A stretch of 64,000 bases of DNA, from positions 65,472,001 to 65,536,000 of the forward strand of contig OZ038379.1 in the NCBI GenBank assembly GCA_964036045.1, in the 5' to 3' direction. Source of the stretch: Eutreptiella sp. 'Long Island Sound 2002'. Taxonomy: Eukaryota > Protista > Euglenida. Below the pieces are notes generated by a model. It saw nothing but the letters and a program-made list of their open reading frames with translations. It ran no database searches and was not told where the DNA came from. Positions within the stretch are counted from its first letter, which is position 1. The number at the start of each line of letters is the position of its first letter. A program made the position numbers and the translations under genes. Below, piece by piece: positions 3,124 through 64,000 of this stretch.

Positions 3124-3475
3124 CCCTACACAACAATGTATGTTACCATTTTACCCTTCCTTGTGCTTTGCTCTTGTTGTAGAGTGCTTGTTCCGGCGAC
3201 GTTCCAATAACTGGTTCCAGCGGTGTTCCAATGGTGTTCTAACAAAAACTGTTTTTGAAAACAAGTTTTTTTCACGTGGCAACGCGCCGGGCAACAAATA
3301 TGAGCATACCAGCGGGGACCCCCAAGGCTAGCAAACAACATATTTTGCCACCATGTACGGGTAGGCTTGGTTGGGGGGTAAATAAATTTTGAACTTTTTT
3401 TGTTCCGGCCAGATAGCCTAGAACATTGGAACAATTTGGCCGGAACAACATTGGGTTTCAAACGCGCACCAAGGG
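3124..3475. mobile_element. About 350-bp MITE-like insertion inside the YR element
   Basis: Starts CCCTACAC, ends GCGCACCAAGGG, flanked by CA on both sides (3122-3123, 3476-3477). GTTCC motifs at left, GGAAC/AGAAC at right. Right end is homologous to termini at 55125 and 57887. Confidence 0.65.
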
Positions 3476-3477
3476 CA

Positions 3478-5397: not shown

Positions 5398-5491
5398 GTG
5401 GTGATCTTGTATGTTGTATGTTTCCTTTCTCTTCGTCCCCCCCCCCCCCACTTTTTCATTTCCGAGCTGATGTGCTGCAGCTTGTGAGCCT

Positions 5492-6448
5492 ATGTCAGCT
5501 GTGTCCATCCCCTTTTACCGCGCCCTGCCGGCTCGTGCGCCGGCTGTGCCGGATGATGAGGCGCACAAGGAGGAGTGGCGGGCGTGGAGGACGGCGGTGC
5601 TTGCGGCGGCAGCGCTGGAGAACCCTGTGCCCTGGCTGCGCTTGTGGGTACGGAGCTTCACGGAGTGTGGGCTGGCCGCGCGCAATTAGCGGGCAGTGGC
5701 GGATGTTGCTTGTGCCCTCTGGGCGTTGCTGGTGGTGGACCCCGAGATCGTGCCTTTGAAGGACATTCTTGTGGGGGCCTTTTTGTTCACGGTGTCTACG
5801 GGCGCTGACCGCCCGCTAGCGGCGATTGGGGCCAGAGCCACCGGGTTGGGGATTGCGGTTCCCACGGTGGCCAACGCGCTCCGCCGGAGGTACCCGGGCC
5901 AGGTGCAGTACTGTCGGGCCCGCCGGTTGCCTTGGGTGGAGGGTGGACTCGTCCCCTTGGTGGCGTGGCTCGTTTGGCTTGTCCTCTTCGGTGGTAGTGT
6001 CCCTGCCCGCCAGGGGGGCACTTTCAGGGGTGACTGGGCGAGGGACCCCAGTTGCAGGCTGCTGCTGGTGGAGGAATGGTTGCCCAACGTCGTGGGCGCT
6101 GCGGTTGGGCATACGGTCGGGGTCACGGCCGACTGGCACGTCTTCTGCACCAGGTTCCGCCACTTCTGGTCGGGCTACGGGGCGGAAGAGATAGCCGACG
6201 TGCTCATATGCCGCCTGCAGCGGGTGTGGCAGGTCTGGTATCTCGTCTTGCCCCCTCAGGATCTTGTCGGCACGCTGCCGCGAGTGTTGGGGGCAGACGG
6301 CTTCCCCGTCTGGCACTGGCGCGTTGGCGAGGAGAGGCTGTGGAGGGTTGCGGTGGCTGCGCTGGGCGACTGCAGGAGGAGGAGGACGCCTGTCCGCAGG
6401 TTCATCGAGGAGCCTGCTCCACTGGTGCTGTGGGGAGGGGGTTATTGA
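5492..6448 (+). pseudogene. Unidentified ORF downstream of pol (one internal TAG), probably part of the YR element
   Basis: ORFs 5492..5689 and 5696..6448 share a frame, are separated by one TAG, and have the same G-rich composition as pol. No recognisable domain. Confidence 0.4.
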
Positions 6449-11052: not shown

Positions 11053-13395
11053 GCCTTTGTACGTGTATGAAAGGTAGTTTTGTTCATCATAAATTGTTTT
11101 GTAAAATATGAATGCATTTTGCTCTTGCTAGCGTACCCATGGGCCATTTTGGTTCAAAACTTGGGGGGCTGGGTCAACACCCTGGAGGTGTTTTTGTTTG
11201 TGGACCGGGGGTTTTTTGCGAAAAAAAATTACCATTTTTTCCAGTTTATGCAAACTATGAAAACATCCCTCCCGGTCATAATTCCATTCATAATTCCCTT
11301 CATAATTCAGAAGTCGTTTTATGAACGGGTTTTTCGTTTTATGAACGCATTTTATGACCGCCTTTTATGAACAGATGCACAGGCAAACAAAACTTGCTCA
11401 ATTTTCAATTTGTTCTGTCCACTTCACTGCTTTTCCTTGTCCCTTGTCCTTGATTGTTCTTGCCGCCCTAAACCTTGGTGCTAGGGCTTGGCCGGTCCTC
11501 CCAAAGCGGGGCCGTGGCCTGGGTTTCCCCCCCATTTGGGGCCTGGGCATGGGTTTTGGGCAGGGGGTTGTGTTGGCGGTTTGGCCGAGGGCTGCGCCGG
11601 GGCATCCACCTCCATTGCAGCGGCCTCAGGGGCACCTTTGGGCTAGGTCTGAGGGGCCTGCTTAGCCTCAGGCTTGGGATCAGGCTTTGCGAGCTAGGGG
11701 GCCGGCTCAGCCGGCGGGTCACCGTCCGGTTTGGTGTTAGGCTTCTTTTTGGCCTTGGCGGCCTTGTTAGCTGCGGCTGCAGCCTTTTGCTGCTCCCTAT
11801 GGGTCAGTGCTGAAGCATGAGAGGCATAAAACAGATGCCTCTCCACCCAAAACATATGCTTTCCCCCCGGGTGTCCGCCCCACACTCTCCCCCCCCCCCA
11901 CAACCGAGGTTACCACCCCCGGGTAGGCACCTTCGGCGTAGAGCACAAAAACCTATGCACCAAGCCGGGGGTCTGGTGGCTCATCCCCCTCCAAGGAGAG
12001 GGGTCCTTCACGCCGCTTTTGCTGCCGCGCCTGCTTCCCCTCCACCCACCTCCTTCCCGTGTCCACGGGGGAGTGCCTCGTCCGACGATGAGCTGCAGCT
12101 CAATTCGAAGGACTTGCGCTTGTGCGTTGGGGGCTTTTCGTGTTTGGTGGGTTTGGGTGGGGGCATGGTAGGGGGTTTGGGTTCGTGTGCGGGGGGGGGG
12201 GGGGGGTTGCTGGGGAGGCGGTGCGGGTGGTGGGGGGGCTCCACCCACAACTGGACTGCAGGATCTCCTCGTCACCACAACCATCCCACCCCAACTCCCC
12301 CAAGCTAGCCCAGCACGGCGTATTTGCCACCCAACGGTCCGTTAGGTGGCTGGACTGTTCCCACTCCCGCAACGTGGACATAATAGAGCACCCCCGTTGC
12401 GGGTTGAGGAGGAGCAGCTGGTACAGGGCGGACAGGGCGATATTGAAGTCAGCGTTGCCCAGCCGGTAGCGAATGCGAACCCCCGCGACGTCTGCTGGGT
12501 TCACTTCCACGTGCATGATTTGCGACATTGCCGTTCATAAAATGTGTTCATAAAGTTCATAAATGATGTTCATGGTTCATAAATCCGAAGTGCAGTGTCA
12601 CTGAATTCTGAATGGCGAATCATGAACGAATTATGAACGAATTATGAACCCAGATACCTCGAAATCCGGCTCTGGGCCAACGGTGCGCATGGTGCTCAGG
12701 GGGGTCCGTAAATGTGCAGTTGCGCTCGGAGGGGTGCCCTAGGGGGCGCCCGTAGGGGCCGTCGTGCTGCTTGCCGATTGCACGTATTGTGCCCACGACT
12801 GTAGGGGCCAACAGCTACCCGGCAACGGGGGGTCGGCAAATTCCACCAAGGGGGACAGCACAAGCGGCGCGGTCAATGACTACCACGTTCTTTCAAACCG
12901 GTCCCGTGTGGGGATGGGCCGTGGGAAGAGCAGCCCGGTGCGAGCGGTGTAGGCATCACCCCGGCGGGTGATGTACTGAGACAACACACGGAAGCCGGAC
13001 CGAGGTGCACCCAATTCCAAAAGGAGCCCTATCAGATAGGGTGCGGGAAAGAGGGCTTCCGCATACGTACGGATGGCGTGCACTTTTGTTTTGTGCACTG
13101 CCGGGAGGGGAGTGTGGTCCATCGCCTCCGAGAAACGGGCCCGGATGAGGGGGGAGGATGATATCCATTGGTCCAACAGGTCGAAACACTGGCTGTCCCG
13201 AAGATTGGTGGCACCACTCAGCCGAGCAAGCATCATGTTAAGCTCTGTGAAGACGGAGTAAGGGTAAGACATAAAAAAAACTCTGCACACAGAAGCGTTC
13301 ATAACAGCTATTCATCATTCATGGTTCATATATGAATCGTTCATATATGAGAAAGGAATTATGAACAATACTCCTTTTCATACAGGTTCCTAGGG
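11053..13395 (-). mobile_element. RAG1/Transib-like DNA transposon, internally deleted non-autonomous copy (A)
   Basis: Both TIRs present; 5' transposase exon (MSYPYSVF from 13272) joins ORF2 sequence near 12775, removing the catalytic core. Homologous to 41568-48290 and 61298-64000. Confidence 0.8.
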
Positions 13396-39560: not shown

Positions 39561-41929
39561 CCATCCACGTTCCTGTGCGTACCTTGTTTGTCGTTGAACT
39601 CTCCTAGACCATGTTCCTTCCCCCACCAGCTCGGTCCCAACATTCAATCTTGGTTGTTGGGGTGAAAAATGGGGATCAAAGATATGGCAAAAGCAACCAT
39701 GAACGAAATTTCGGGGGATCTTGCTCAATGTAATCAACATTACCGGCACGGCTAAACCAGTGCGCCGCACAGGATAAGGTGAGGTTTACGGTGATGGTAA
39801 GGTTAGAGGGAGGGCAAGGGGAGGTAAGGGGGGCATGTGATGGACCAACACTTTGCCTTGGGGGCATATACCCCCCCAATAACCCCACCTTGAGCACCCA
39901 CCCCCAACCAAGCCTCCCGGACTACCCCCCCCGTGCGGCAAACGCCCCCCTAGACCGCACCCGTGCCCCCCCGAAAGGGGGCATCCGGCAAACTATTAAA
40001 TGGGGGGGCTAGTTGGCGTTGCGAACTCAGGAGGCGCCCCCCTCGAGGGTGCGGGTAATCTTGAAGGCCCTCTTTGTCACCGGTGCCTGCAACCGGCAAA
40101 TCTGCGGCACATGGTCCGCAGGTGCGACGTCGTCGCAACCTTATTCGGCTGTCTCCCGCATGGCCCTCTTGGTTCGCAATCAAGGGTGCCCAATATTGTC
40201 TCTGGGGGTTCCAATGCGTTGAATGCCCCCATACAACGCACATCGTGTGGATGCATCGGCCCCTTGAGCAACGGGGCCCGCTGCCCAAAGATCGTTCCGC
40301 CCTGTCCGTGGATGCGAATCTCGGCCCGTTGCGGGGGCCGTTGCGGGTGCCGTTGCGGGGCAGGTGGAGCACGGTTCCGCGGGGCTCATCAGCATATCAT
40401 TGTTGGGCATCTGGCCCAGTCGCCGAGGCGTGGTGTCCATGTAGCACAACTCTTGGGCGCCTAGTCCCGGCGTAAGTGACCATTGTCCGCTCCGCGATCG
40501 GGGGCTACCTCCCGCCCGTTGCCCTGGCCACTGACGAATGCGCCCCTTTGCCGCGGACAACGTCAGAGATTTTCAGGGGCGCGGCCCCCATTCAGATACG
40601 TGGCTACACCTAGCTGTGCTCCAGCTTTGTGACCGGGCTGGTGTTGAACGTGGAGTTGGAGGGTGTCATAGGGTTGGGGTCCAAAGGGCAAAAATGACAA
40701 AAAACGGTTCAACTGGGCTCAGTGGGATAGGCACTGTCACCATGGGTGCGGTTGGCCATACATTGAACGCACCATGGAGGGGAGTATAGCATGAGTGCAA
40801 GTAGCATATTGTGTACAATTTAGATGAGAGGTACCACCTAGTCATGCTTAGGCCAACCACTGCCAAGGACACGCCGTTGCCCGATAGGCTGTGGGAGACC
40901 ACTGCGGGGTGGTGGGGGGCGTTATGCTCCATTAGGCCACAAGACCTCATCGTGTGCCGCTGAACGCCATCATACTAGGCGGAGGAGCAAGCCACAAAGC
41001 GGCCTGGTAGTGCATAAAGGCGGGGGCGGCCGTGTGTTGACAACGTGGGCGACCATATAATTGCTTAGGTGGAGCACATGGCCATTATTTGCGGCGAGGT
41101 TGTAGGGGATTGAGAGGACACGACATATTGTACATGGTGTGTATCCATGCCATTTCTAACTCTAGTGCATCTAGCCCCCATGTCTTGGCAAGGCATGTGG
41201 TTTTGGTTGGTGGTGCTTCAGATGTTAGTCATAACGGTGTTGCTGGTGCCCGCTTCCTAAGTGGGCTTTGGACTAGGTTGGTGACCCGTGGGTGGTATCT
41301 CTATGCCCTCCACCTAAGGAGGCACCATGAGTACAGCGGGGGGCGGGTGGCGTGGGAGGGTTGCAAGCTAGTTGCTTGCTGTCACTGCCGTGGTTCGTGT
41401 GTGGTGCGTGGGCCAGGACATGCGGGGGTACGCCACCTAATATGATGGTTTTTCCTTCGAAACTGATTCAAGCGTTTTGGGCACTGGGCACTCATGGTGC
41501 ATGCCCTTGTGGTGTCCCTAGTAAGGGAGTAGCCACCCCCAAACCAAGGAAATTGAATCTAGGAGCACCCTTGGTACCTGTATGAAAAGGAGTTCTGTTC
41601 ATCATGCTTTGTTTTATGACAAATGAACGTATTTTGCTCTTGCCAGGGTACCCATGGGCCAGTTTTGTTCCCAACCTGGGGCGCTTGGGGAGCATCCTCT
41701 AGGTGAGGTTTTTCTTGTGGATCGGGGGTTTTTTGTAAAACTTGCCATTTTTGCTAGTTTATGCAAGATATGAAAACATCCTCTCCTGTGCATGATTTGA
41801 TTCATAATGCGATTCCTAATTCACAACTCGGTTTATGGACGCGTTGTTTGTTATATGAACATGTTTTATGAACGCATTTTATGAGCAGATGCACAGGCGC
41901 ACACAACTTGCACAAATTTCAATTTGTTC

Positions 41930-44900
41930 TGTCCACTTGACTGTTTTCTCTTGCTCTTTGTCCTTGCTTGTTGTTGCTGCCCTACACCTCAGGGCTCGGG
42001 CCTATCCGGTCCTCCCAAAGGGGGGCTGTGGCCTAGGTTTTCCCCCCATCCGGGGCCTGGGCATGGGTTTGGGCAAGGGGTTGGGCTGGCGGTTGGGCCG
42101 ACGGTTCGCGATGGGCCATACACCTCCATGGGGGCCGCCTAAGGGGCGGCTTTGAGTTGGGGCAGGGGGGCATCCTTAGCCTAAGTGTTGGGGTCACGCT
42201 TTGCGGGCTTGGGGGCCAGCTCGGCCGGCGGGTTAGCGTCCGGTTAGGGGTTGGGCTTCTTTTTTGCCGGCTTGGCGGCTTTCTTCGCTATAGCAACAGC
42301 TTTTTGCTGCTCCCAACGGCTCACCGCTGCAGCATGAGAGGCATACATCATGCCTCTCGACCCGAAACATCTGCTTTTCCCCTCGGTGTTCCAACCACAC
42401 TCTCCCCCCCCCCCCAACAAAGGTCATAGGCCCCGGCTGGACACCAGTGGTGTAGGGCACAAAAACTTGTGTGCCAAGCAGGGGGTCAAGTGGCCCATCC
42501 CCCTCTAAAAAGGGGGGTTTCTCACTCCGCTTTTGCTGCTGCTGTTGCTGCTATTTCTCCTTCACCCCCTTCCCCTCTCCACAAGGTAGTGCGTTGTCCG
42601 ACGACAACGAGCTGCCCGATTGGAAGGTTTTGCGCTTGCCACGGGGCCCTTTTTCGGTTTGGAGGGTTTCCAGGGAGGTGGGGGGGCACGGCGGGGTGGT
42701 TTGGTGTTGTCGGCGTTGGGGGGGGGGGGGGCTTGCTGGTAAGGGGCTACGGGGATTGGGGTGGGGGGTCAACCCATAACTGGACACCAAGATCTCCTCA
42801 TGAGCACGCCCCTGCCAGCCCAACTCATCTGGGCCTGCCCCACATGACGTAGTCGCTGCCCCAGTGTCCGTTAGGCGCCGGGACCGTTCCGACTCGCGCA
42901 ACCCGGCCAAAATAGAGCACCCCTGCTGCGGGTGGAGGAGGAGGAGCTCGTACAGGGCGGAGAGGGCCATGGTGTACTCACCGTAATGCAGCTGGTAGCG
43001 GATGCGAACACATGCGGCGTGTACGGGGTTCACCTCCAGGTCTTGGATATGTGATTGTACCGTTCATAAAATGCGTTCATTAAAGGCGTTCATAAATCAC
43101 GTTCACGGTTCTTAAACGGGTAGTGCGGTGTCGTTGAATTATGAATGGTGAATTATCAACTCATTATGAACGCATTATGAGCGCAAACACCTTGAAATCC
43201 GGCTCTTGTCCAACCGTGCCCATGGCGCACACGGCAGCCCGCAAATGCGCGACTGCACTTGGACGGGGGCCCTGGGGGGTGCTTGTAGGGGCCGTGGTGC
43301 TGCTTGTGGCCGAGGCTGCCCGGCCAAGGGGCTTGATGGGGCGGGTGATGGTGCGGCCTTGAGCACCCTCTCGTATGAAGCCTCTTTCCCAGGGTCCTAT
43401 AGCCCCCCCAAAAAGGATTCGCACTATGGAATACACTCCCATTTGTGCCCCGAGCAGTGTAGCTTCACCCCCCCTTTTCCCTCCCAGTGGAGGAAGCACA
43501 ATTACCAATAGGACCCCGGCATCCAAGCACCGCGCGGGCTGTAACAACTTTACTTTGTGTCAAGTCCCTCGCACCTATTGGTTCGGGGATGGGGGATAGG
43601 GGTTTTTCCGGCACGGAGCTTCCATGTCCTTGCCCCCCAATGTGTACCCCCCCCTGCACCCTTGTTCCGGATCCGGTGGCGCGAAACTTAGGCCACGCAA
43701 ACTACCCACCTGTTAGGACCCCGTTATGTGCGCTTCCTTACATATTGGCTGTGTTATTTTTGTACGTGTCTTTTTGTGCTGGGGCCGCTACGTCAACAAA
43801 TGGTGCATAAAGGATATGTGTTTTTTGCCTGTTCTGTGCGTGCACAACTGCAATTCCACCTTTCATGTCTCTATGTGCCATTATACCTAGTTGTGGCCGA
43901 AATTTCTTTCAGCCCTCCGTTGATGGGAAGAACGATATGCACATTCCAAGCATTTTATCAAGCTAGACCAAATTTAGTCCACCCCTTCCCCTCCTCCTAA
44001 AATCTATCTCCAAAATGACATTAATTGGTTCTGGACAAAATTTAGGCCCCCCATTGCTATTGCATTGTTCCCACTTGCATTACCCCCACTTGCATTGCTC
44101 CCTTGTGCTTAGGGAATTTAGGAAAGCAATCGTATTGGAATATTTTGCTGTAGGCTTCACACCCCCTGTTGTGTTACCTTTGTTGGGCTTCATGGGATGT
44201 TGTTGTGACTGTTGCTGTAGATGTTTGTGCCTCATGCCTTCATAATGATTGACTTTCATAAATTGGTTGTGTCATTCGCTGTTATTGGTCAAAGGTGGAC
44301 TGAATTTCGTCCAGCTTTCGGATTTCGTGCTTTAATTGTATTATTTGCTGTTATGGTCCAAGCTGGACTAACTTTCTTCCTTGCCCGCCTTTGTCATGAA
44401 TTTGCCAGTCTGCAACACTGTTGCATGGCTGTTGCACATATGTTAGCTATCAATGATTTAGATTTTGTGCGGCCGGCAATATTTTGTTGAGTCTGTAGTA
44501 TAGCGTCTCAAATTTCACTTCAATAGTGCCCCTATGCTTAATTTGCTGTTTCCAAACTGTGTCTGCAACCGCTAATTCTAAAAGACCCAATTCTTCGCCC
44601 ACGGACCACGCCAATGATGAGCCACCTACAAAGCCCAGTGCCAACGGCACTCCCGTGTAGTCCAGCCCTCATCCCACAGCAAGACCCGTGGCCAACACGG
44701 CAATGAATGCCTTTGCGGTCCATTTCACCCCCTCCCAACAGAGTCAGGCTCCAATGTGTATGCTGCCCCGAGGTGGATTCTTAACAGACACCTCAGGCCA
44801 ATGCAGGGAAGGGTGGACCTAAGGGTGTCTAGAAGAGGCCTATTGGTTTGCGCAAGAAGCGCTAGATTGTATGTTCCTTTTTTTTTTTGGCTTGTGTGAC

Positions 44901-46336
44901 GTATATATTAAATTTGTAAAACCCGCTTCTTCGTCTAGCGCCGTCTATGCAAGTGTTGTTGCTATTTTGATACCTCTTTTTTTTATGTTTAAGTTGAGCT
45001 GGACTAAATTTCGTCCAAGTTCGTCTGTTTTGAAGAGCACACAGTGCATTTTCAAGGATGTGCCATGTTTGGCAGAAATTTCGTTTGGGCGCCTCTACAT
45101 TGGCAAATAGAGACCTCATTTAGGATGACCAGTTTTCGGTGACTGTCGGTTGACAGTTGTTTTGCACTTGCACATTGTTTGATGGAATGTCAAAGGTGTG
45201 CCATGCTGTTTGTTGTCATACAGTGCAGTGCTGCATGATCAATATATGTGGGACACTCGAAATGGCCATGTATTAACAAAATTGGGTTTCCAGTGCGGCC
45301 TCTCTCAATACGCATGTATGGTTGTCACGTGGCACTCCCTTGTATGTGTTTGCATGACAATACTATTTTTGAAAATATAAAACACTCCATTTGCCCTCAC
45401 AATGTGCAAGGGGTTATGCTGGTGAAAAATGTACACCCCATTTTTGGGTGTAGCCCCCTTGGGCCAGCATGGCACCTCGTAGTCCAAGCGGAGGGAGGGG
45501 GGGGGGGTAGTTTGCGTGGCCTAAGCAACCGACGGCGAAACGCCCAGCGCAGGGTGATATACGCCAATGTCGGGCTACGAAAAAACGGGGGCATCGGGGG
45601 AGTACCCGTTGTCCAGCGATGCGTGCACTCTGCGGAGCGTTAAGACATTGTGCTAGTTGGCGTGGCTCAGGCCCCATGCATGGCCGGCCTCCGCCCTCAA
45701 CCACGGGTCACAACCAAAAAAGTCCCGCCCCATGTGTCCTCCGCTGCCATCTCCTCCATCTTGGCCTTCAACTCCTCGATCTCCTCCTCGTGTTCCTCCT
45801 ATTTCACCCCCCCCGCTCTGTCCTTCTTCCTCTTCTTGTGCTCCGTCTTCTTCTCCTTCTTCCTCTTCTTCTCCTCCTTCTTCTTCTACTACCTGCTCCT
45901 CATCCTCTCCTCGGTTGAGAGTGCGACGACTCGCTTCTCGCGGAGTTGCCGGCGGTCGGGGATGCAGGGTGAGCGGCGGGGGGTGGCTCAGAGGAATGGG
46001 CTTGAATCGGGGATTGAGGGGGAGTAGGAGCTTGAGGTGGTGGTGGGGGTTGAGCTTAAGCTTGAGCTTGAGGTGGAGCTTGGGCTGTCAGCCGCTACTC
46101 CTATGGACGTAGCAGAAGCAGTTTTTCATAAATTGTTCATAAAACCGGTTCGTAATTCATCCGTTCATAAATGGGTCCACAAAATGACGGCAGTTTCGGT
46201 TTTCTGAACGCCGAATTGTGAACGCAATATGAACACGAACAATGGCAAACAACATGCTACCACGGCGAAGGTCGCCTACGGATTCTCTTGCCTTCTGATT
46301 CTCTTGCACGAACTTTCTAAGTTCGGCGGTGTCCAT
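41930..46336 (-). pseudogene. Multi-exon ORF2 of the transposon, unknown function
   Basis: Starts MDTAELRKFVQE (46336); Q/P- and E-rich exon 46100-45690; VEVNP..RIRY.L...ALSALY.LLLL exon 43050-42790; GT-AG intron 42525-42327; K/A/P-rich last exon. Synonymous differences between copies. Confidence 0.65.
43691..45521. mobile_element. Nested 1.83-kb TIR element with TA target duplication
   Basis: Perfect 17-bp TIR GGCCACGCAAACTACCC (43691-43707) / GGGTAGTTTGCGTGGCC (45505-45521), TA on both sides; host sequence on either side is contiguous in copy D (about 63600-63630). No intact transposase seen. Confidence 0.85.
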
Positions 46337-48177
46337 GGACGGACGAAGAGTGATAAAGCTCAGGGGGCGCAACTGGCGCTTGGGTGGAGGGTGGTTGTGG
46401 GCTGGCGCTTGGAATGGAAGCGGCGGTGCACGCCGCGCTGTGTGGGGTCTTATAGTGCCACACCGGGAGGTCAAATGTTAGAAACCACCATTCCCGCACC
46501 TGTTGGACAACGCTTGCGCCGTGTTCCACTGCACTCTTCGCCGTCCCTCCACCCCTAGAACTATGCCTATGGTACCCCTTCTTCAAAATCTAATTGGTGC
46601 TGTGCACAGCATCCTCTGACTTCTTAGACAATCCCACCCCGCATGCATCCACACTCTCAAGCATTGTATCACAATCCTCTTCGAGGAACAACAAATAGTG
46701 CGACCCTGACTCCGCGCAGCAATGTTCTGGAAGCGCAGCAGCAGACACAAAGGGCGTGGCACAACCGGAACTGGCGAGTACAAAGTGCGTAGCAATCTTC
46801 GGAGACCCACAACCGCTTGCCAAGTGGAGTACTCCTTGGCGTAGCAAGCAGGGGCGCAATCTGTTCCGAGGCAGAGAACGAGTTGTGGGCCTCCTCTTTG
46901 TCCGGTGCGTTGGGCGCCTCCAACCACACACCACATCGGTTCCGGTACACAATTTGGTGTACCTCCTTTGCAACTCCGATGCAAAATCCACAAAAATACG
47001 CAGTTTTTGGCTATGACCAGCGGCAACCGGGAGGTGCATCCTGCCGCATCCAACCTTCAGCCAGTCACCCCATACCCATGATGATTGGTGCTGTTGGATT
47101 GTGTTGTCCTCCGCGCGGCAATGCCATTCCAATTCTTGGCCGTAGGGGCCGCAAGGCACGATTGAAAATACTCCCCACTCGGGGCGCCACGCTGATGTCC
47201 AGCCGCCGCCGCAGACACGGTTGGTGCCCCCTAAGGAGGACTCCTACTGGCACCTAGCTGTCACACGAGTAAAGTTTTTTGCAGTCAATAATGGTTTGCA
47301 TGACCTATGTTCACAAAAGGTGTTCATAATTTGTCCTCATAAAACTGGTTCACCGTTTGTAAATCGGCAGCGCGGCTTTTTATGAATTGTTTTTCGATTC
47401 ATGACCGGGCGAATTACGAAGAACATATGAACACGGAAATGCACACTACAAATCTACACCACCGGAAGCCCAAGTTTGGCCCAAGGCAACCATATCCTTG
47501 TCCCCTGTAACGGCCATGCCGACGACCCATAGGAAGGCGGAGGTTCTCGCCTTTGCCCCAGCGTTCAATAGACCAATCGATAGCTGCGGCCAACTCCAAC
47601 CGGCGCACAGGCGCCATCACCCCACACTACAAAGGTCAAGGGGCGTGCCTAGTCAATGGACTGGCACAGGGCTGGCCGGGATTGCACTCATTGTGCCCAC
47701 GACTGTAAGGGCCAATAGCGACCCGACGGCGGGGGATCGGCACATTCCACCTTGGGGGAACATCGCAAGCGGGGCGCTCGATGATTTCAACGTGGTGTCA
47801 ACTTGGTCCTCAATGGGGATCGGCTATGGAAAGGGCAGGCCGGTGCGAGCGGTGTAGGCAGTGCCCCGGCGGGTGATGTACTGAGGCGACACACGGAAGC
47901 TGGACAGGGGTGCACACAACTCCAAAAGCTGCCCTAGCAGATCGGCTGCGGGAAAGAGAGCCTCCACATACGTACCGATGGCGTGCACCTTGCTTTTTGG
48001 GAGCGCTAGGAGGGGAGTGTGGACCAATGTGTCCCAAAAACGGGCCCGGATGAGGGGGGACAATGACATTCATTGGGCCGGCAGGTCGGAGTAGTTGCTG
48101 TCCTGCAGAACAGTGGCACCACTCAGCCAAACAAGCAACATGTACATCTCCGTGAAGACGGACTAAGGGTAGGATAT
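46317..48177 (-). pseudogene. RAG1/Transib-like DDE transposase, copy C
   Basis: LTFVVWGDG, VLLRGHQPCL, GCTSRLPLVI...FLWILH, GSHYLLF, GLSKKSEDAVHSTN; start codon mutated to ATA, stops and frameshifts; intron about 47445-47306. Confidence 0.75.
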
Positions 48178-51117
48178 AAGAAAATCTTTGGACAAAGAAG
48201 CGTTCATAAAAGCTATTCATAACACATGGTTCGGTTCATTTCTAAAAGAGGAATTTTGAACAATACTACTCTTCATACAGGTACCAAAAGCGCCCCCCAC
48301 CCCATTGATATAGCAAAAGAAGCATCATAGGCCGCTTGGACAGCAAAAGCGGCAAGGCGCCGTGTTTGGGTTTCCTCCATATCGCCATCTCATAAAAGTT
48401 GGCCTTTTCGATTCTGAACCGGTTACATATTGCATGCTTCCCACTGCTTGCTTACTTTCTAGATCATAAAGGTGTTTGCGGGGATTGACTATACTTCATG
48501 ACCAAAAATTACTTCTGGATTGCGGATCCGGATGTATTTGCTTGTTGTGCTTTTCCTTATCGGTGCGCACTTTTGTGGCCTGTTACCTCCACCATCAAAC
48601 AAGCATAAGTGTGAATGATGCGCTACCAAGCATCCCTTTTACTTCCACACAAAGACATCCCAAAGGCACTCTGAATGGTGGGGTCCGCCTCACAAGGCTC
48701 CTCATTTCATGTCAACTCCTCCGAACGTTCCACAGAGGCTCTTGTCCGCCACAGAGCACGCTACAACTCGCTCCATCTCCCATGGGTAGGGGGACAATGA
48801 GGACATGGCCAAAATTGCCACAGTTCCTACACCTCGGACTTTTCAACCGGGTACCACTGCCGGTCACATCTTCTCCAAGCGGTCGGTGTTGATGGCCTTG
48901 CAACCGGGTGAAGGATCGCACCACTTGCTCTCAATGAAGGGGGTAGCGTGCGAAAAAAGTAACCTCGGTACGCGAAATTCAGCCCGGTACGGGAGGGACA
49001 AGTGTCGCAGTTAAAAAGGAAATAACGACCACTGTTGAAAAGTGCCCGGTTTCCAGGGTATGCCCAGGACCATTGTTGGGGTCGAAAAATAGCATGTTAG
49101 TGGCGCACAGCTAATCGCGCATGAGTGATTGCGGTCCTGGTTGACGGTTTTTGGAAGCTTAGAGCTGCCACTGCAGCTATGCCGCAATCTAGAGGTCCCC
49201 CTACTTGGGCAGTACACTGCTTTTTTTAGGCCACATTGCCCAGGTGGGGCGCCCTAGGGGCGCCGACCACACGTGTGCGTCTTCCTCAAACGTTGTTCCT
49301 TCATTTCGAATATTGGTCCTAGTCGGCAGTACGTCCGTTAGACAGGTGGCCAATGGTAACCTCAGGGACTCATTTTGGTTGCACATCTCAAGAGTAGTTG
49401 GTCCGTTGTTGCTTGGTCGTGCTAAATGATCGTGCTTTTCAGTGTGACCGCGCAATGTGGTCACACACATGGCTGGCCGGAGGTCCCGGACAGTGCGAGC
49501 ATTCTTGTTAAACCCACTCCTCCGCGTTTTCGTTGTAGACAATACAAATCTTTCACTTTTCCACAAATGGCTCACATGCGCACATCTCCGCCCTGCTTGT
49601 CTCCCATGAGCGGTGCCACAATGTGGCGCAACTGCACCGTCTCGACGAAGAAGTCACAGTGCCCCTGTGGTAGAGGCCTGCCGATAGTGTAGGCCGAGAG
49701 AGAAAGGCACTAGGTTTCCACTGCTCAGGTGCCCGGCATATGGATTGGATGTTGTACGGCAAAGTCGTGCCGGAGGTCTTTTAGAGTAGTGTCGCCTTAG
49801 ATACTGCCCTAATGAACATGCCCATCCGCGTAGACAAGCATCCGGAGCTCCTAGCTGCTCTGTGGCTCGCCTGTGCATTGGCTGCTTGTGGCGCACCCGT
49901 TGTCGCTTGTGCCCACTCTCCGGGTCTCAGACCTCGATGACTGCTCCGATTGCCCTTAGCGGTTGCAAGTGTCCCTGGGTGCTTCCCAGATAGGTCCCCA
50001 CGTTGTAGCAGCTGCGGCGGATGTACCCCGTCGTGCGGGGCAGCTATGAGAAGCCGCTTTTGAATGTCTGTGACAGACGAGGGCTTTTCGCCCTCATGTG
50101 CCATACGGATGGTCGTTGGGACGACATAGCGGGCCGTTGGTGGCCTTGTTTGCCGTGCCTTGATCTGCTACCCCGGAAGCATGCAGCTAGGCTGAACAGC
50201 TGGATGAACATCGCCATTCGTCCAACCGACATAGAGCCATATTACCGGCAAAAGAGCCATGTGCTGTCCCGGTGCCTCCGCAGGGCCAAGGACAAGGGGT
50301 ACGTTGCCCACGAGCCGTTAGGCCAATTACACGAGGACCTCCGAAAGTTCGGGTAGCGTTGCGAGAGCTACAAGGCGCTCGCTGTTGCCATCGCAGACAA
50401 AGACCGTCCTCTTGTTGACGTCGGGCAGCACGGCTTCTTAAGGCTGCGTGGGCTCGAGCCAAAATGTCGGGTCACCTCTGCGATGCATGCAGCATGCCGT
50501 CCTAGGATGCCTGGGACAGGGATGATGCCCCTCTAGCACCACTAGGCGTTGGGGGGTCCAAGGTGTTGCAAGCGCTCGACAACGCCGGGTACCTACCCAG
50601 CTACGACACCGGCCGAAGGCACGTTGAGGGAGCCCCCCTGTGTAAGCTCCAACGTGCTGCCCACTCTGTCCTGGCTTGTGGAGGCCCTAAGCCACTTCGT
50701 GGGTGTCCATGTGTAGCACCTGTGCATGCACTAAATCCATGTGGAGGACGTCATCATTGTCTCTCGCGAGGCAGTCGCGGTGGGATTGTGCGCTATGTGT
50801 TGCCGGCACGCCATGCCCTTGGCCATGGTGACGCCGTGGAGGCTTTGGCCCAACAGCTGGAGGAGCACCCCGATACGTACCAAGCCACCAACCGTGCAGC
50901 GGTTGTGTGTCCAGCTCCCCATACAGAGCAGGAGAACTACACCATCCCTATGTGGGTCATCCGCACATGCGGCAAGTTCAAGGCGCGGCATTCGCATGCT
51001 GTGTGGAAGCCTATGGCGGAGCTCTGCCTCAATGCTGCATTTCAGGACCGTGGTTTCCTCCTATCCGCAGATGCGAATGGTGATACACGGCGGTCCCGCG
51101 AGATGGAGGCCGCACTA

Positions 51118-55124: not shown

Positions 55125-57376
55125 CCCTTGGTACACGCTAGAATACCCAATCTCGTTCTAGCCTAGAACCGGCTAGAGCGGCTAGAATGAAAAAAAGAGG
55201 GGGATACCCCCCCCCCCCCCGCATGGGGGCGGGGAGGGGGGGGGATGAGGTGTCTAACCTCGACCCCCCTATCCATACTCGGGGGCCCATACTTTTTTTT
55301 CACAATTTCACAGTTTTCACCTGATTTTGCAGTCCAAAAATTTTTCGTTCTAGCGGTGTTCTAGCTACGTTCGCTAGAACGTCGCTAGAACATTCTAGCC
55401 TAGAACACAATCAGAACAAAAACATTCATGCATGTGTCGCATCTAAGGGACACCAAAGTGGGGGTGGGGTGGAGGGGTAATACACATACACTAATAAAAA
55501 TCAACACACTTGACGCATGCATAGTCATCTGTGCCCCCCCCCCCCCACACACTTTGGCATAGGCATATGCCCGACACAACACACAGCACAAGATGTCACG
55601 GGGGGGGAGGGTGGGCCAAGAGGTCAAACACAAGCACCGCACACACACACCCTCAATGTCAAGCTATCAGCCTCCCCCCCCTCTTTCCATGTTGTGGTCT
55701 GGGTTGTGGGGCCCCTGCTTGTTTTGCCTATGGTTAGGGAGGGTATCCATTTCCTCTTTGCAGTTGTGCTGGTTTTTTTTATTGCCATGCGGATGTCAAG
55801 AAGTTGGTACACAGTGACACCAAGAGGTAGGTGTGTTACTCCTTCCCTCCTCCCTGCCATGTACACGTGTGTGACCGTGTGTCTGTGGTATGGGGTTGCC
55901 TAGTGCACTGCTGTAGCGTCAGGAGCTGTGCTGTGCGGGTCAGTGGTATGCTTTGTCCCTCCTCCTCCAAGTTTATGCAACCCCCCCCCCCCCCCCCTGT
56001 GTGCACTGGTGATTGGCTTGTTGCTTGGTTGGCTGTTGGTTTTCGGGTTGCTTGGTTGGTTGTTGCGTTGGTTGGTTGGTTGTTGGTTGATTGGTTCTGG
56101 CACATCCGAGTCTGGCTGGTTGGTTGGTTGGTTGGTTGGTTGGTTGGTTGGTTTGTTGGTTGGTTGGTTGTTGGCTAGTTGCTGGGGTGTATGTGTGTGT
56201 ATTGTCTGCACACATGCTGTGTGGTGTTGCAGCAAAGTGTGTCTGTGTGTAAGCCTGTATGTGCAGCGATTGCAAAGGTCCTGGGGGGGGTTGCGCACAT
56301 TTCATTTTGGTGTTCTGGGCGCGTTCTAGCGGGGTGTTCTAGTGGCGTTCTAGCGAGGTGTTCTAGCGGCGTTCTAGGGAGCAAAGCGGCGTTCTAGCGG
56401 CGTTCTAGCGAGGTCTTCTAGCGGCGTTCTAGGGAGCGAAGCGGCGTTCTAGCGGCGTTCTAGCGGCGCCGCTTCGCTCCCTAGAACGCCGCTAGAAAAC
56501 CTCGCTAGAACACCGCTAGAACGCCAAAATGAAATGTGCACAACCCCCCCAAAGACCCTTGCAATCGCTGCACATACAGGCTTACACACAGGCACAGTGT
56601 GTAGCAACACCACACAGCATGTGTGCGGACAATACACACATACACACGCCAGTAAGTAGCCAACAACCAACCAACCAACGAACCAACCAACCAACCAACC
56701 AACCACCTCACCAACCAGCCAAACACAGCTGTGCCAGAACCAATCAACCAACAACCAACCACACAACGCAACAACCAACCAAGCAACCCGAAAACCAACA
56801 GCCAACCAACCAACAGGCCAAGTACCAGTGCACACGGGGGGGGGAGGTTGCAAAACCTGGGAGGAGGGGGGACAAAGCATACCACTGACCCGCACAACAG
56901 CACAATGCATAACCCAGCGGGGGGAGTGGGGGGGCAATGGAGGAGGGATGGTGGGAAGGGAGAACCTGTACACTAGACAACCCCACACCACAGACACACA
57001 TGGCAGGGAGGACGGAAGGAGTAACACACCTACCTCTTGGTGTCACCGTGTACCCACTTCTTGACATCCACATTGGAATAAAAAAAACCAGCACACCTGC
57101 AAAGAGGAAATGGATACCCTCTCGAACCTTAAGCACAACAAGCAGGGGCCCCACAACCCAGACCACAACATGGAAAGGGGGGGGGGGGGGCTGATAGCTG
57201 GACATTGAGGGAGTGTTTGTGCGGTGCTTAATTAGTTAATTGTTTTTGGCCCCTTACCCACCCTCCCCACCCTTGACATTGTATGTTGTTTGTTGTGTTC
57301 TGCCTATGCTTTTGCAAAACTGTGTGTATGCTACGGGGGGGGGGGGCATATGCGTATGCATGCGTCAAGTGTGTTG
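55125..57376. mobile_element. Foldback-like element: about 0.9-kb diverged inverted arms around a GTTCTAGC array, preceded by a CCCTTGGTACAC terminus
   Basis: 55502-56467 is the reverse complement of 56468-57376, including (TTGG)n/(CCAA)n; centre AGCGGC|GCCGCT; terminus and small hairpin at 55125-55405. Confidence 0.8.
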
Positions 57377-60015: not shown

Positions 60016-61297
60016 TGGCATTTGACGCGATTCGCCCTGCCACCGGGCAATGCATGCACAAGTGAGGGCATTATGTGTACTCTAAGAGACGCCGCACCGA
60101 ATGGAACAGGAACCGGGTCCATTGGGGCCGGGCCCTCGGAATGTCGGGGGGGGTGGGGGCACAAGTTGGACTTTTTGGGGAGTTGTTGGCCTTTTTTGCC
60201 CATGCTGCGCCTAATTGGCTAGAATGAAAACCCTTGCAGTGCTGACTGATTCCATTTGACGTGTTGCGCCTTGCCAACAAGGTATGCATGCACAGGTGAG
60301 GGCATTATGTGTACGCCACGGGACACTGTAGGGAACAGAAAAGCAATTGGGTTCATCAGGCCGCGCACTTGGGGAACCGGGAGGCACAAGTTGGACTTTT
60401 TGGGGCGTTATGGGCCTTTTTTGCCCATACTCTATGGCATTAGATCGACATAGCAGGACAGAAGAAGGAGAAGCGGCAACGGGATAAGACATGGAAGGTA
60501 GAGAACGAGAAGAAGGAGAGGGAAGACAAGGAGAAGGAGCAGAAGGAGAAGCGGCCGAAGGATAACATTGTGCCGTCGGAGGAGAAGGCGGACAATGAGA
60601 AGAAGGAGAAGGAGAAGGAGAAGGAGAAGGAGAAGGAGAGGGAGGAGCACCCCACCCCCGCCGCCCTCATGGAGGAGCGGCTACTGCGCAGCATTCCTAG
60701 CGATGAGGTGCGGATCCCCCAACAGCCCTCATCCCCGCCTTTCGGCCTCCCAATAGGCCCACCGGATGAAGATTCTCCAGTTCCAAGCGTGAGAACCTCG
60801 ACACTACGGTGCCACAACGCTGCTTTTCAACGCCACTATTCCAGTCTCTACTCTCTACTTTCGTGCATGCCCATACTGCGCCTAGTCCATGGCAATGGGA
60901 ACGCCTGCAACACTGTCTGATGGCATTTGTCGTGAAGTGCCTTGCCAACGTGGAATGCATGCATAGCTGAGGGCATTATGTGCACACCAAGGGACGCCGG
61001 AGCCAATGGAAAAGAAATTAGGTCCATCGGCGACAAGCAGTGGGAGAACTGGAGGCCACAATATGGAGCCTTTGGAGGGTTATTGGCTTCCTTGCCAATA
61101 ATGCGCCTCGCTGGTGCAATGAAAACCCCTGCACCGCTGAGTGATGGTATTTGACGTGTTATGCCCTGCCCACGGGAAAGTCATGCACATTTGAGGGCAT
61201 TACGTGTGCGCTAGGGGACGTCCCAGCCAATGGAAAGGAATGGGTTCCATCGGGGACGGGTACTGGGAGAATTGGAAGGCACAAGCTGGACCCTTTG
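60016..61297 (+). repeat. Diverged about 230-bp repeat, four units (60016, 60251, 60921, 61145), split by a K/E-rich low-complexity insert
   Basis: Shared CATTTGACG..ATGCA..GAGGGCATTA(T/C)GTGT..CACAAG(T/C)TGGAC; unit 4 is cut by the transposon at 61298. Confidence 0.85.
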
Positions 61298-64000
61298 CCC
61301 TAGGTACACTTATGAAAAGTAATATTGTTCATAATTCATTTTTCATATATGAAAAATTCATATATGAACCATGAATTATGAACAGCCTTTATGAACGCCT
61401 CTTTGTCCACAAATTTTTTTATGTCTTACCCTTGCTCCATCTTCACGGAGCCGAACATGATGCTTGGTCGGCTGAGTGGTGCCACTAGTCTTCGGGACAG
61501 CTAGTGTTCCGACCTGTTGGACCAATGGATGTCATCGTCCCCCCTCATCCTGGCCCGTTTCACGTAGGCAATGGACCACAATCCCCTTCTGGCGGTCCAC
61601 AAAACCAAGGTGCAGGCCATCCGTACGTATGCGGAGGCCCTCTTTCCCGCACCCCATCTGATAGGGCTCCTGTTCGAATTGGGTGCACCTCGGTCCGGCT
61701 TCCGTGTGTTGTCTGAGTACATCACTTGCCGGTGTGACGCCTACACCGCCCGCAACGGGCTGCCCTTCCCACGGCCCATCCCCACACGGGACCAATTTGA
61801 CGCAACGTGGAAGTCATTGACCGCTCCGCTTGCGTTGTCCCCCCCCCCCGGTGGAATATGCCGACCCCCCTTTGTCGGGTTGCTGTTGGCCCCTACGGTC
61901 ATGGGCACAATACCTACACTCCCGGCCAGCCCTGTGCCAGTCTATTGACTGGACCCGCCCCCTCACCTTTCTTGTGCGGGGTGACGGGTGACCTTGCGCC
62001 GGTGGGAGTTGATCGCAGCTATCGGTGGGGCCATTGAACCATGGGGTAAACGCGCACACACCCCCCTTCCTATGGGGCATCGGCATGGCCGACGTAGGTG
62101 ACGAGGATATGGTTGCCATGGGCCATATTTGGGCTCAGGGGCGGCAAGTTGGTAGTGTGCATTTTCGTGTTCATAAGTTGTTCATAATTTGCGCGTTCAT
62201 AATTCGAAAAGTGCCGTCATAAAACGCCGTGCTGCCGATTTGTGAATTATGAACACGTTTTTTGAACACCAGTTATGAACAGGCTTTATGAACACAGGTC
62301 GTGCAATCCATTATTGACTGCAAAAAATTTTACTCTTGCGACAGCTCGGTGCCGGCAGCGGTCATCCTTGGTGGGGAGCAGCCGTGGCTGGCGGCTGATG
62401 GGCATCAGCGTGGCTCCCCAATTGGGAGCATTTTCAACGAGGCCGTGCGGGACAATATGGCCAAGCGGTTGAATGACGTCGCTGCTCGGAGGACAACTCA
62501 GTCGGATGCCAACAATCATTGTCGTTTTTCAGGTGACCCGCAAAAGTTTGGATGCGGCAGGATGCACCGGCGAGCCGTTGCTGGTCATAGCCAGAAACCG
62601 GGTATTTTTGTGCATTTTGCACTGTTGCATGGCCTTCGGGAGGCTTTTCATGGCCTTTTTGGAGGCGCAGGTGGGAAATCATCCCCTTGAGGTTGCCGGG
62701 GGGGGGTACAAAAAACCGGTGTGGCGTGTGGTTTGGGGCGCAGAACGCACCGGACCGGGAGGACCTGTTCTGGGACTGGGAGCAGATGGCTCCGCTGCCT
62801 GCATGCGTCGAGGAGGACCCACCGTGGCAAGCGGTTGTGGGGCTCTGATCATTGCTACGCACTGTGTACTAGCCCCTTCCGGTTGTGCCACGCCCTTCGT
62901 GCCGACTTGTTACTGCTGCGTTTCGGGAACACTGCTGCGGGGAGTCGGGGTCGCACTTTTTGTTGTTACTCGAAGAGGACTGTGATACAATGCTTGAGAG
63001 TGCGGATGCATGCGGGGTGGGATTGGCTGCCATGTCGGGGGATGTTGTGGAGAGCACAAATTTCATTTTTGAAGGAGGGATACAATGGGCATATTTCCAG
63101 GGGTGGGGGTGCGGGTAACAGTGCAGTGTAACGGGAAGGAATGGTCGTGTAGCACGTTTGGGAATGGTGGTTTCCAACCTTTGACCTGCCGTTGTTGCAC
63201 TATAACACCCCACACACCGCGGCGTGCACCGCCGCTTCTCCTCTGAGCACCACCCCCCAAGCACCCTCCACCCACGCGCCCTCTGCGACCCAGCTTTATT
63301 ACTCTTCACCCATCCATGGATTCCGCCGAGCTGAGGAAGCTGCTGGAGGAGAGTAACATGGCGACCTCGCCCTGGTGGTATGCTGCCTGTCGGCTGTCGT
63401 TCGCGTTCATATTGCGTTCATAATTTGGTGTTCATGGCCCCGTGGTTGAGGGGGGAGGCCGGCCATGCATGGGGCCTGAGCCACGCCAACTAGCGCAATG
63501 TGCTGACCCTCCCCTGGATGCAGGGAGCGCTAAACAGTGGGTACTCCCCCGATGCCCCCCTTTCTTCGAGCCCCGTGGTCACTTACATTGCCCTGCGCTA
63601 GGCAATTCGCCGTCTTTTGCGGCATCGCATCCGCAACAAGGGTGCGGGGGGGGGCCTGTCGGCACACAGGGGGGGCATCGGCATGGAAGCCCCTGCCGGG
63701 AAAGCCCTTGTCCCCCATCCCCGAACCAATTGGGGCTGGGGATTTGACGCAGCCCAAAATTTCTACGGGCCCACGGGGGGCCTTGACGCGGGGGTCCCAT
63801 TGAAAGCCGTGCTTCCTCCACTGGGAGGAAACGGCGTGGGTGAAGCTGCAGCGCTCCGGGCGCAAGTTGGAGTGCATACCCCAGTAGGAATCAATTTTCG
63901 CGGGGCTATATGTCCCGGGACAGGTGGCCTCGTACCAGGGGGCTGTCGAGCCATCCCATGAAGCCCCTTGGCCGGGCAGCCCCGGCCACCACCAGCACCA
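61298..64000 (+). mobile_element. RAG1/Transib-like transposon copy D (runs off the window end)
   Basis: Terminus CCCTAGGTACACTTATGAAAAG, transposase 61421-63356, ORF2 start 63316, internal deletion near 63436, then collinear with 45710-43300. Confidence 0.85.
61421..63356 (+). pseudogene. RAG1/Transib-like DDE transposase, copy D, with GT-AG intron 62148-62297
   Basis: FLVRGDG (Asp 61983-61985), VILGGEQPWL (62376-62378), GCTGEPLLVI..VFLCILHCC, GSHFLL, MSGDVVESTN (Glu 63050-63052). Removing the intron joins WAQGRQ to VVQSIIDCK in frame. Several stops and frameshifts. Confidence 0.8.

Follow-up and report, generated by a model that had tools for sequence, protein, structure and literature searches.

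A 64,000-nucleotide stretch of DNA from the euglenid Eutreptiella sp. 'Long Island Sound 2002' (assembly GCA_964036045.1, contig OZ038379.1, positions 65,472,001 to 65,536,000 of the forward strand), which we call the window, contains three copies of a repeated element. The best explanation for them, to which we give a probability of about 0.8, is that they are dead copies of a two-gene cut-and-paste transposon of ~4.9 kb with a DDE (Asp-Asp-Glu) transposase of the RAG1/Transib type. This transposon would represent a separate, undescribed lineage of the CACTA/EnSpm-Mirage-Chapaev-Transib (CMCT) clade that is neither a typical Transib nor a RAG-like (RAGL) element. RAG1 is the protein that assembles antibody genes and is the textbook case of a domesticated transposase. 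Its origin has been traced through Transib and RAG-like transposons, most of them from animals.

Dead copies of an abundant transposon family

Self-BLAST of the window and the sequences of the element ends showed that positions 41568-48290 (copy C) are a decayed element of 6.7 kb with terminal inverted repeats (TIRs). Self-BLAST also revealed a second copy (copy D, 61298-64000), which has the opposite orientation to copy C and ends at the window edge, and a third (copy A, 11054-13395), which carries an internal deletion. The TIRs are ~38 bp long and read CCCTWGGTACCTGTATGAAAAG. Identity between pairs of copies is 73-85%. Copies C, D, and A diverge from the family consensus by 15.4%, 7.5%, and 10.1%, respectively, and all three are broken. 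The original prediction treated 41568-48290 as one two-gene transposon. This interval is indeed a TIR element, but its 6.7 kb is not the canonical length because a foreign TIR element of 1,838 bp is inserted at 43687-45524; without it ~4.9 kb remain. The insertion is missing from copy D and from loci L001 and L002. A full-length copy at L001:6533-11410 measures 4,878 bp, in line with a canonical element of ~4.9 kb. The features of the three copies are as follows, where D1 and D2 denote the first and second catalytic Asp.

Copy C
48253-48290, minus strand: TIR on the transposase side, CTTTTGGTACCTGTATGAAGAG..., decayed from CCCTAGGTACC...
47463-48144, minus strand: remnant of transposase exon 1 (N-terminal domain, pre-RNase H) with several stops and frameshifts
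47618-47616, minus strand: D1 codon, GAT, within exon 1
47305-47462, minus strand: predicted hairpin intron 1, inverted GTTCATAA/TTATGAAC arrays; GT..AG in the consensus, decayed here
46219-47304, minus strand: remnant of transposase exon 2, with the motif GC..VFLWILH, and KKGYHRHSSRGGG and VREWWF after the Glu codon
47226-47224, minus strand: D2 codon in exon 2, now CAC (His)
46604-46602, minus strand: catalytic Glu codon in exon 2, now CAC (His)
46090-46255, minus strand: second hairpin, between transposase and second gene, with GTTCATAA/TTATGAAC arrays and a pyrimidine tract and AG at its end
45525-46089, minus strand: second gene, first part of exon A, low-complexity acidic/basic
43687-45524, no strand assigned: nested unrelated TIR element of 1,838 bp, ends TTAGGCCACGCAAACTACCC
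43167-43686, minus strand: second gene, remainder of exon A, with the conserved HWELCFLHWEERGW.. block common to the second open reading frame (ORF) of the family on locus L013
43064-43166, minus strand: third hairpin, motif arrays
41869-43063, minus strand: second gene, exon B, VMDVEVNPADVAGVRI.., with a possible Tudor-like barrel (..GAQVFVPYPNGVYPGVV..VWVEHPGEKEMFRV) and a tail rich in Lys, Pro, and Ala
41568-41868, minus strand: subterminal arrays and the other TIR (41568-41605, CCCTTGGTACCTGTATGAAAAG)

Copy D
61298-61335, plus strand: TIR, end sequence
61454-62138, plus strand: transposase exon 1, D1 codon GAC at 61983-61985
62139-62297, plus strand: predicted hairpin intron, 159 bp
62298-63420, plus strand: transposase exon 2, D2 codon GAG at 62376-62378 and Glu codon GAG at 63050-63052
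up to 64000, plus strand: internal deletion, then the start of the second gene, then the window end

Copy A
11054-13395, minus strand: retains consensus positions ~1-604 and ~3179-4867, which comprise the two TIRs, the beginning of exon 1, and the greater part of the second gene; the catalytic core is missing

Each copy is inactive for its own reasons. Copy C has His at both D2 and the catalytic Glu, many stops, and the foreign element within its second gene. Copy D has Glu at D2 and several stops, and copy A has lost the catalytic core.

The nested element at 43687-45524 appears to be a non-autonomous TIR element with the ends TTAGGCCACGCAAACTACCC and their inverse. Diverged kin of it (67-72% identity) occur at L012:1312-2199 and L012:3263-3834.

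Searches with a window ORF piece matched 26 related ORFs and searches with a locus piece matched more than 137, all from one European Nucleotide Archive (ENA) assembly; six loci around related ORFs were taken for comparison. In sequencing runs of organism A, ~2,500 contig pieces per DNA run align on 2.75 kb of copy D (61250-64000), and ~1,750 of these show a likeness of 90% or more. The corresponding number of contig pieces on 61250-64000 is ~220 in a run that carries the label organism B. The family is therefore highly repeated and common to both organism labels. When the contigs of the runs were aligned on copy D, the contig ends of many other copies fell exactly at 61298. The 8-mer GTTCATAA occurs 30 times in the window where 1.2 occurrences are expected, and 29 of the 30 lie within the three copies. 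Because of this enrichment, the >137 ORF fragments in one assembly, and the open consensus frames described below, the family is not a product of chance. A scan of the window with Rfam gave no matches. We conclude that the family is an abundant cut-and-paste DNA transposon of a euglenid genome and that the window copies are anciently inserted, dead relics without functional consequence.

A consensus transposase with a DDE triad

Comparison of copies C and D by tblastx gave near-equal identity in all three frames. There was thus no selection signal by which a frame could be chosen, and a majority consensus of 4,778 bp built from ten copies was used instead. The consensus restores long open frames of 278 codons (exon 1) and 381 codons (exon 2), and the two exons together encode a transposase of ~600 aa. 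Its motifs are VRGDGYP (D1), GGDQPWL (D2), CILHC (the CxxH motif), and a Glu in VVESTNYILKKGYNGHSSRGGG. Exon 1 includes ...PLTFVVRGDGYPCAGGSWSQLSVGLLNHG... and exon 2 includes ...VLLGGDQPWLRRLLGISVAPQVGSIFNE ... GCTGEPLLVIARNRVFLCILHCCMAFGRL ... APDGEEAHNLF ... SGSHYLLFLEEDCDTMLESADACGVGLAAVSGDVVESTNYILKKGYNGHSSRGGGAGKSAVEREAMVVQQVWEWWF.... In a 94-row family-wide alignment the two Asp and the Glu are conserved in 86-92% of rows.

The motifs quoted in the original prediction were all found in copies C and D. The D1 region reads LTFVVWGDG in copy C and LTFLVRGDG in copy D; the Glu region reads SEDAVHSTN and SGDVVESTN, respectively, followed by KKGYHRHSSRGGG; and the GCTGEPLLVIARNRVFLCILH motif and SH(Y/F)LL were confirmed in the copies. 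From CAC in copy C and GAG in copy D, an ancestral GAC codon at D2 had been proposed, and this agrees with three observations: the ten-copy consensus reads GAC, over a dozen other genomic copies encode GGDQPW, and position 62378 is C in ~95% of the depth of aligned contigs. Beyond this change at D2, copy C has also lost its catalytic Glu (His, 46604-46602).

Predicted fold of the transposase

Because of the intron, no natural ORF of the window family covers the full transposase. Natural exon-2 ORFs were tiled into an alignment with 277 match states (A4), which was searched against 1.84 billion representative proteins and matched 478 clusters at E<=1e-3. The matches include intact exon-2 ORFs of many divergent families as well as P0178, a natural ORF of 434 aa from Logan contigs (SRR211305xx runs) that holds D1, D2, and Glu in one piece. 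P0178 is linked to the window family by hmmsearch with an E-value of 1.7e-35; a word-based protein search with it found one relative only.

We predicted the structure of P0178 using AlphaFold2 with the 94-row alignment A5. The resulting model is confident, with a predicted local distance difference test score (pLDDT) of 86.9 and a predicted template modeling score (pTM) of 0.88; a natural fragment, P0036, modeled with a shallow alignment of near-identical copies reached a pLDDT of 50. In the P0178 model D47 is on the first long strand (40-51), D128 is at the end of the fourth strand (117-127), and E359 is in a helix (356-372). The ~230 residues from D128 to E359 are mostly helical.

All 49 matches of the model in the Protein Data Bank (PDB) at E<=1e-3 by Foldseek were RAG1, BbRAGL, or HzTransib, with E-values down to 1e-12, and a search independent of Foldseek returned the same order. 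Among Swiss-Prot models the best eight were RAG1 (E 1e-11 to 6e-10, template modeling (TM) scores 0.62-0.66), followed by hAT-derived proteins with E>=1.6e-4. RAG1 clusters also came first in an ESM feature search (score 0.94, 180 of 256 features shared). In a shape search of the ESM Atlas, RAG1 clusters had TM scores of 0.68-0.73, the fuller-length ones 0.72-0.73. A cluster in which 47% of members carry Pfam Transposase_21 scored 0.73 over 397 residues, and the best shapes were unannotated cnidarian and Mucoromycota clusters (TM 0.77-0.81 relative to the query, over 388-414 residues, root-mean-square deviation 3.6). The best match among AlphaFold DB clusters was A7SJ52 (TM 0.72, E 2.8e-15). 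These best-matching clusters of the ESM Atlas and AlphaFold DB, from cnidarians, Mucoromycota, and others, have neither a family name nor a Pfam domain.

Searches at the level of sequence gave a different outcome. Pfam scans of the window ORF pieces, the natural family ORFs, and ten intact relatives gave no relevant match at E<=10, and the Pfam models of RAG1 domains gave no match at this threshold. When the family profiles A1, A4, and A5 were compared with PDB sequences, no RAG1 or HzTransib chain was matched at E<=10 and only chance matches were returned.

On the basis of the model, there is strong support for a DDE transposase that belongs to the RAG1/Transib structural type, with a predicted pre-RNase H region, split RNase H domain, helical insertion, and C-terminal domain. 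It shares with RAG1, BbRAGL, and HzTransib the order D..D..E, with spacings of ~80 and ~230 residues compared to 108 and 254 in RAG1, a helix carrying CxxH/DxxH past D2, and, past the Glu, ESxN and then basic residues. By contrast, identity to these proteins is 11-13% and there is no similarity at the level detected by HMMER.

Termini, target-site duplication, and zinc motifs

All 13 ends that were found read CCCT(A/T)GGTACCTGTATGAAA or close variants, and the ~38-bp inverted repeats at the ends have the sequence CCCT(A/T)GGTACCTGTATGAAAAG. The termini of the element are 5'-CCCTWGG..CCWAGGG-3' and the TIR starts with CCCTWGGTACC. Thus, the deviant CCCT(A/T)GG termini that had been noted in place of CAC are real. 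The A or T at position 5 is side-specific in most copies with both ends, and most other copies carry the letter typical of the side concerned. The end bases are therefore part of the element rather than of its target. This side-specificity rules out CCCTWGG being a palindromic target duplication.

We looked for a target-site duplication (TSD) in the four copies with both ends (copies C and A of the window, L005, and L012). For a 5-bp TSD, 0-1 of the 5 flanking bases match in these copies, which are old and make the test imperfect. In a 2-bp frame the flanks are TC/TC (L005), AA/AA (L012), CA/CG (copy C, one CpG-type change), and GT or TG versus AT (copy A). Two of these four old copies match exactly (p~0.02 by chance), so that a TSD of 2 bp seems likely from the flanking sequences.

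The 94-row alignment shows no conserved C-x2-C or H-x3-4-H pair between D128 and E359. The Cys and His columns in this interval whose conservation is at least 50% are C190, C208, H211, and C212 (63-91%), H198 (52% of 21 rows), C311 (68%), and H321/C322 (64-66%). The zinc motifs of the RAG1 C727/C730 and H937/H942 type are thus not conserved in the euglenid family.

Putative hairpin introns built from the motifs of the element ends

The subterminal regions of the element are filled with GTTCATAA arrays, and the segment between the two transposase exons consists of GTTCATAA repeats followed by their inverse. In the consensus this segment (intron 1) opens with GT and closes with AG after a pyrimidine-rich stretch. 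Without it, ...ALGQIWAQ runs directly into VLQSIIDCKKFYW..., and the joined sequence agrees with the unbroken ...ALRHLWQHNLSAIQAIIDGHALH... of P0178, which has no intron. The position also agrees with the way the exons are arranged in another family, that of L013. The hairpin motif is specific to each family: GTTCATAA in the window family, GTTCTAC on L007, and CGTTATAGCG on L013. Inter-exon hairpins at these other loci, with inverted motif arrays that match the subterminal ones, lie at the following positions.

L013:1280-1460, 3230-3390, and 5470-5620
L007:1-110 and 1575-1720

The intron hairpin of copy D, a decayed copy, folds modestly better than shuffled sequences (z -1.8). Judging by sequence, at least the first hairpin appears to be a GT..AG intron. 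To the two genes of the original prediction it has to be added that the transposase gene is interrupted by the predicted intron, at 47462-47305 in copy C and 62139-62297 in copy D. All the long consensus ORFs, which are the two transposase exons and three blocks of the second gene, are in one reading frame, and stops in the consensus are almost confined to the hairpins (48144 down to 41869, minus strand). It is therefore possible that the element is expressed as a single spliced polyprotein, or else as a polycistron whose parts would receive a spliced leader at the AG behind each hairpin.

Other families were encountered at the comparison loci. L001:13569-15447 (minus strand) holds a decayed second, divergent transposase family that is ~32% identical and has the motifs LMFIVRGDAYP, VILGGDQPW, VVLCILH, and GDISESINHFLKHGHKEHSDRGGG; its D1 and D2 regions are not separated by a long intron. 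The family on L013 (ENA ERZ27267786, a 6,075-bp contig) is apparently intact, with an exon 1 of 257 aa from Met, an exon 2 of 405 aa, and a second ORF of 687 aa. Another apparently intact family, on L014 (ERZ27267785, a different assembly), has an exon 1 of 298 aa and an exon 2 of 455 aa.

The second gene

Downstream of the transposase on the same strand, past the second hairpin with its pyrimidine tract and AG, the consensus contains further open frames. L001 has a natural second-gene ORF of 351 aa, and in the L013 family the 687-aa ORF occupies the corresponding position, with another hairpin and exon behind it. Pairwise blastp, with its small search space, showed that second-gene blocks are collinear between the window family and the L013 family: the block HWELCFLHWEERGW... 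matches HWSLIFLRFQALGW... of L013 with E 1e-5 and the block VMDVEVNPADVAGVRI matches VFEIEVNPQDYRGVRI with E 0.006. No link between the second genes of the two families was found by phmmer. The second gene of the original prediction is real, since it is open in the consensus and in L001 and is collinear with the second ORF of L013.

An ESM search with the C-terminal part of the second gene gave a Tudor/Agenet lead (score 0.79). It is possible that the predicted protein ends in a Tudor-type barrel followed by a Lys/Pro/Ala-rich tail. No RAG2-like kelch or PHD signature was seen in the second gene in Pfam and ESM searches, both of which start from sequence.

Placement of the family

The CMCT clade includes lineages such as Plavaka, ESTA, and Lanisha (Kojima 2025, PMC12730594). 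Its lineages have C(2)C and H(3-4)H motifs, mostly 5'-CA..TG-3' ends, and TSDs of 2-5 bp (PMC12730594). For those other than RAG1/Transib no structure has been solved, and they too are detected by way of RAG1 (PMC12730594); fungal ESTA transposases, whose insertions duplicate TA, came to light only via HHpred matches to RAG1 (PMC12730594). RAG1/Transib relatives outside animals have been published, including a pelagophyte RAGL element (AanRAGL) and Transib-like proteins in bacteria, fungi, and plants (PMC9435367; PMC10462144). Our literature search found no published link between Transib or RAG1-like transposases and euglenids.

The catalytic-core architecture of RAG1/Transib that had been proposed from motifs alone is borne out on the P0178 model by Foldseek, Swiss-Prot, and ESM features, and both the RAG1 core and HzTransib, suggested earlier for structural comparison, are among the PDB matches of the model. 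The proposed RAG1/Transib-like identity holds for the fold, but membership in Transib is not shown: its 5-bp TSD, CAC ends, C(2)C and H(3-4)H motifs, and detectability by sequence are not seen in the family. No test supports a placement with Transib and RAG1 over other CMCT lineages, and the Transposase_21 cluster is as close as RAG1 (TM 0.73 compared to 0.72-0.73). We regard the family as a separate lineage because it has no match in Pfam or among PDB sequences, no CA ends, no 5-bp TSD, and no C(2)C or H(3-4)H motif, and because the best shapes are unannotated. It would be new as a group set apart from the named CMCT lineages by their descriptions, by profiles, and by shape. The suggestion of a possibly undescribed branch fits this reading, but its novelty outside animals is diminished by the non-animal RAG1/Transib relatives already published (PMC9435367).

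That the family is a true Transib or RAGL member, and the closest non-animal relative of RAG1, we consider improbable. RAG1 and BbRAGL are its best matches among solved structures, with HzTransib next, and RAG1 leads the Swiss-Prot and ESM feature searches. The sequence ESxNxxLKxxxxxHSxRGGG after the Glu also resembles the corresponding RAG1/Transib motif. However, the four pairs of ends have no 5-bp TSD and read CCCTWGG, not CAC or CACAGTG-like. The zinc motifs are not conserved, Pfam RAG1 models and the PDB sequences of RAG1 and HzTransib go unmatched, the Transposase_21 cluster equals RAG1 in shape, and unannotated clusters exceed it. The second gene, on the same strand as the transposase, shows no kelch or PHD features, and the family differs further from RAG1 systems in the putative hairpin introns of its genes and its euglenid host. 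AanRAGL of Aureococcus offers a parallel, as a RAG1/Transib-type transposase outside animals encoded by a two-gene TIR transposon of a unicellular alga; yet its RAG2-like partner, asymmetric CAC-type TIRs, 5-bp TSDs, and recognisable RAG1 similarity (PMC9435367) were not found in the euglenid family.

An element from the CACTA-Mirage-Chapaev side of the clade, a divergent relative of Mirage, Chapaev, or ESTA, might appear RAG1-like only because RAG1 and Transib are the sole solved structures. Such an origin is unlikely, if less so than membership in Transib. It would be consistent with the likely 2-bp TSD and with two genes on one strand, since Mirage-, Chapaev-, and ESTA-like elements have 2-4-bp TSDs and often several genes, as well as with the Transposase_21 cluster that equals RAG1 over 397 residues. 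Fungal ESTA provides a precedent for recognition through RAG1 alone (PMC12730594). Against this, there is no Pfam Transposase_21 match at E<=10, the ends are not 5'-CA..TG-3', the C(2)C/H(3-4)H signature is absent, and the best shape matches carry no annotation from this side. These same absences separate the family from the CMCT lineages at large, with which it shares RAG1-like structure comparisons, the occurrence of multi-gene elements, and probably a short TSD (2 bp). A generic likeness of RNase H folds, with the enzyme really being MULE-, hAT-, or P-like, is very improbable. These three groups share ESxN and C/DxxH motifs, CxxH and ESxNxxxK also characterize MULE and IS256, and one AlphaFold DB cluster match (rank 5) is automatically named 'MULE transposase domain-containing'. 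But hAT-derived Swiss-Prot proteins reach TM scores of only 0.19-0.28, the top 30 include no FAR1/FHY3-type protein, Pfam shows no MULE, hAT, or P match, and the ~230 residues with a helical insertion between D2 and Glu are unlike MULE.

Several points weigh against the separate RAG1/Transib-type lineage that we favor. The model is that of a homologue ~30% identical to the window family and not of the window protein, and its D47, D128, and E359 are the predicted counterparts of RAG1 D600, D708, and E962. Because RAG1/Transib are the only solved CMCT structures, the PDB ranking is blind within the clade and cannot tell which CMCT lineage is nearest. The TSD rests on four old copies. The second-gene similarity between families is weak, the second gene has no Pfam match, its Tudor call is only a lead, and exon A gave no ESM result. 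An RNA-labelled run (X9) had no match to the element and runs of unrecorded kind had no listed joint across 62139-62297, so that we only infer the splicing and expression of the element.

Neighboring features

Nested inverted repeats unrelated to the transposon lie at 55671-57189, with arms of 371 nt (89%) and 192 nt (93% complementarity). They are probably another TIR element or a palindrome. At L001:3568-4587, adjoining transposon copies, is an ORF of 339 aa with a weak match to RVT_1 (E 1.2e-4), under the Pfam cut-off.

Proposed mechanism and significance

We propose that the transposase would bind the terminal repeats and the subterminal GTTCATAA arrays and pair both ends of the element. 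By analogy with RAG, HzTransib, and CMCT relatives, cleavage would be a Mg-dependent nick followed by hairpin formation, and integration would occur at a short staggered cut, probably of 2 bp. The second protein would probably tether or target the complex on chromatin. More broadly, and at somewhat less than even odds, the family may be a deep euglenid branch of the RAG1/Transib-CACTA clade that is invisible to profiles, with non-CA ends, a ~2-bp TSD, a Tudor-type partner, and GT-AG introns that consist of inverted arrays of its own subterminal repeats, with a different motif in each family.

If this is true, the partner would read chromatin by its Tudor-type barrel and in this would be a functional counterpart of the RAG2 PHD finger. 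The 478 clusters (50% identity) of profile-invisible RAG1-fold transposases in Euglenozoa suggest that the range of this fold is wider than known and that profile-based surveys undercount the RAG1-fold clade. The euglenid lineage may serve as an outgroup-like test of which features of RAG1 are ancestral, namely the zinc motifs, CAC ends, 5-bp stagger, and partner protein. For euglenid genomics, an abundant repeat family now has a name. It also provides a putative case of transposon introns made of the transposon's own end motifs, which bears on the origin of the hairpin introns of euglenids: if the repeats are transposase-binding sites, hairpin introns in the genes of euglenids may stem in part from such hairpins.

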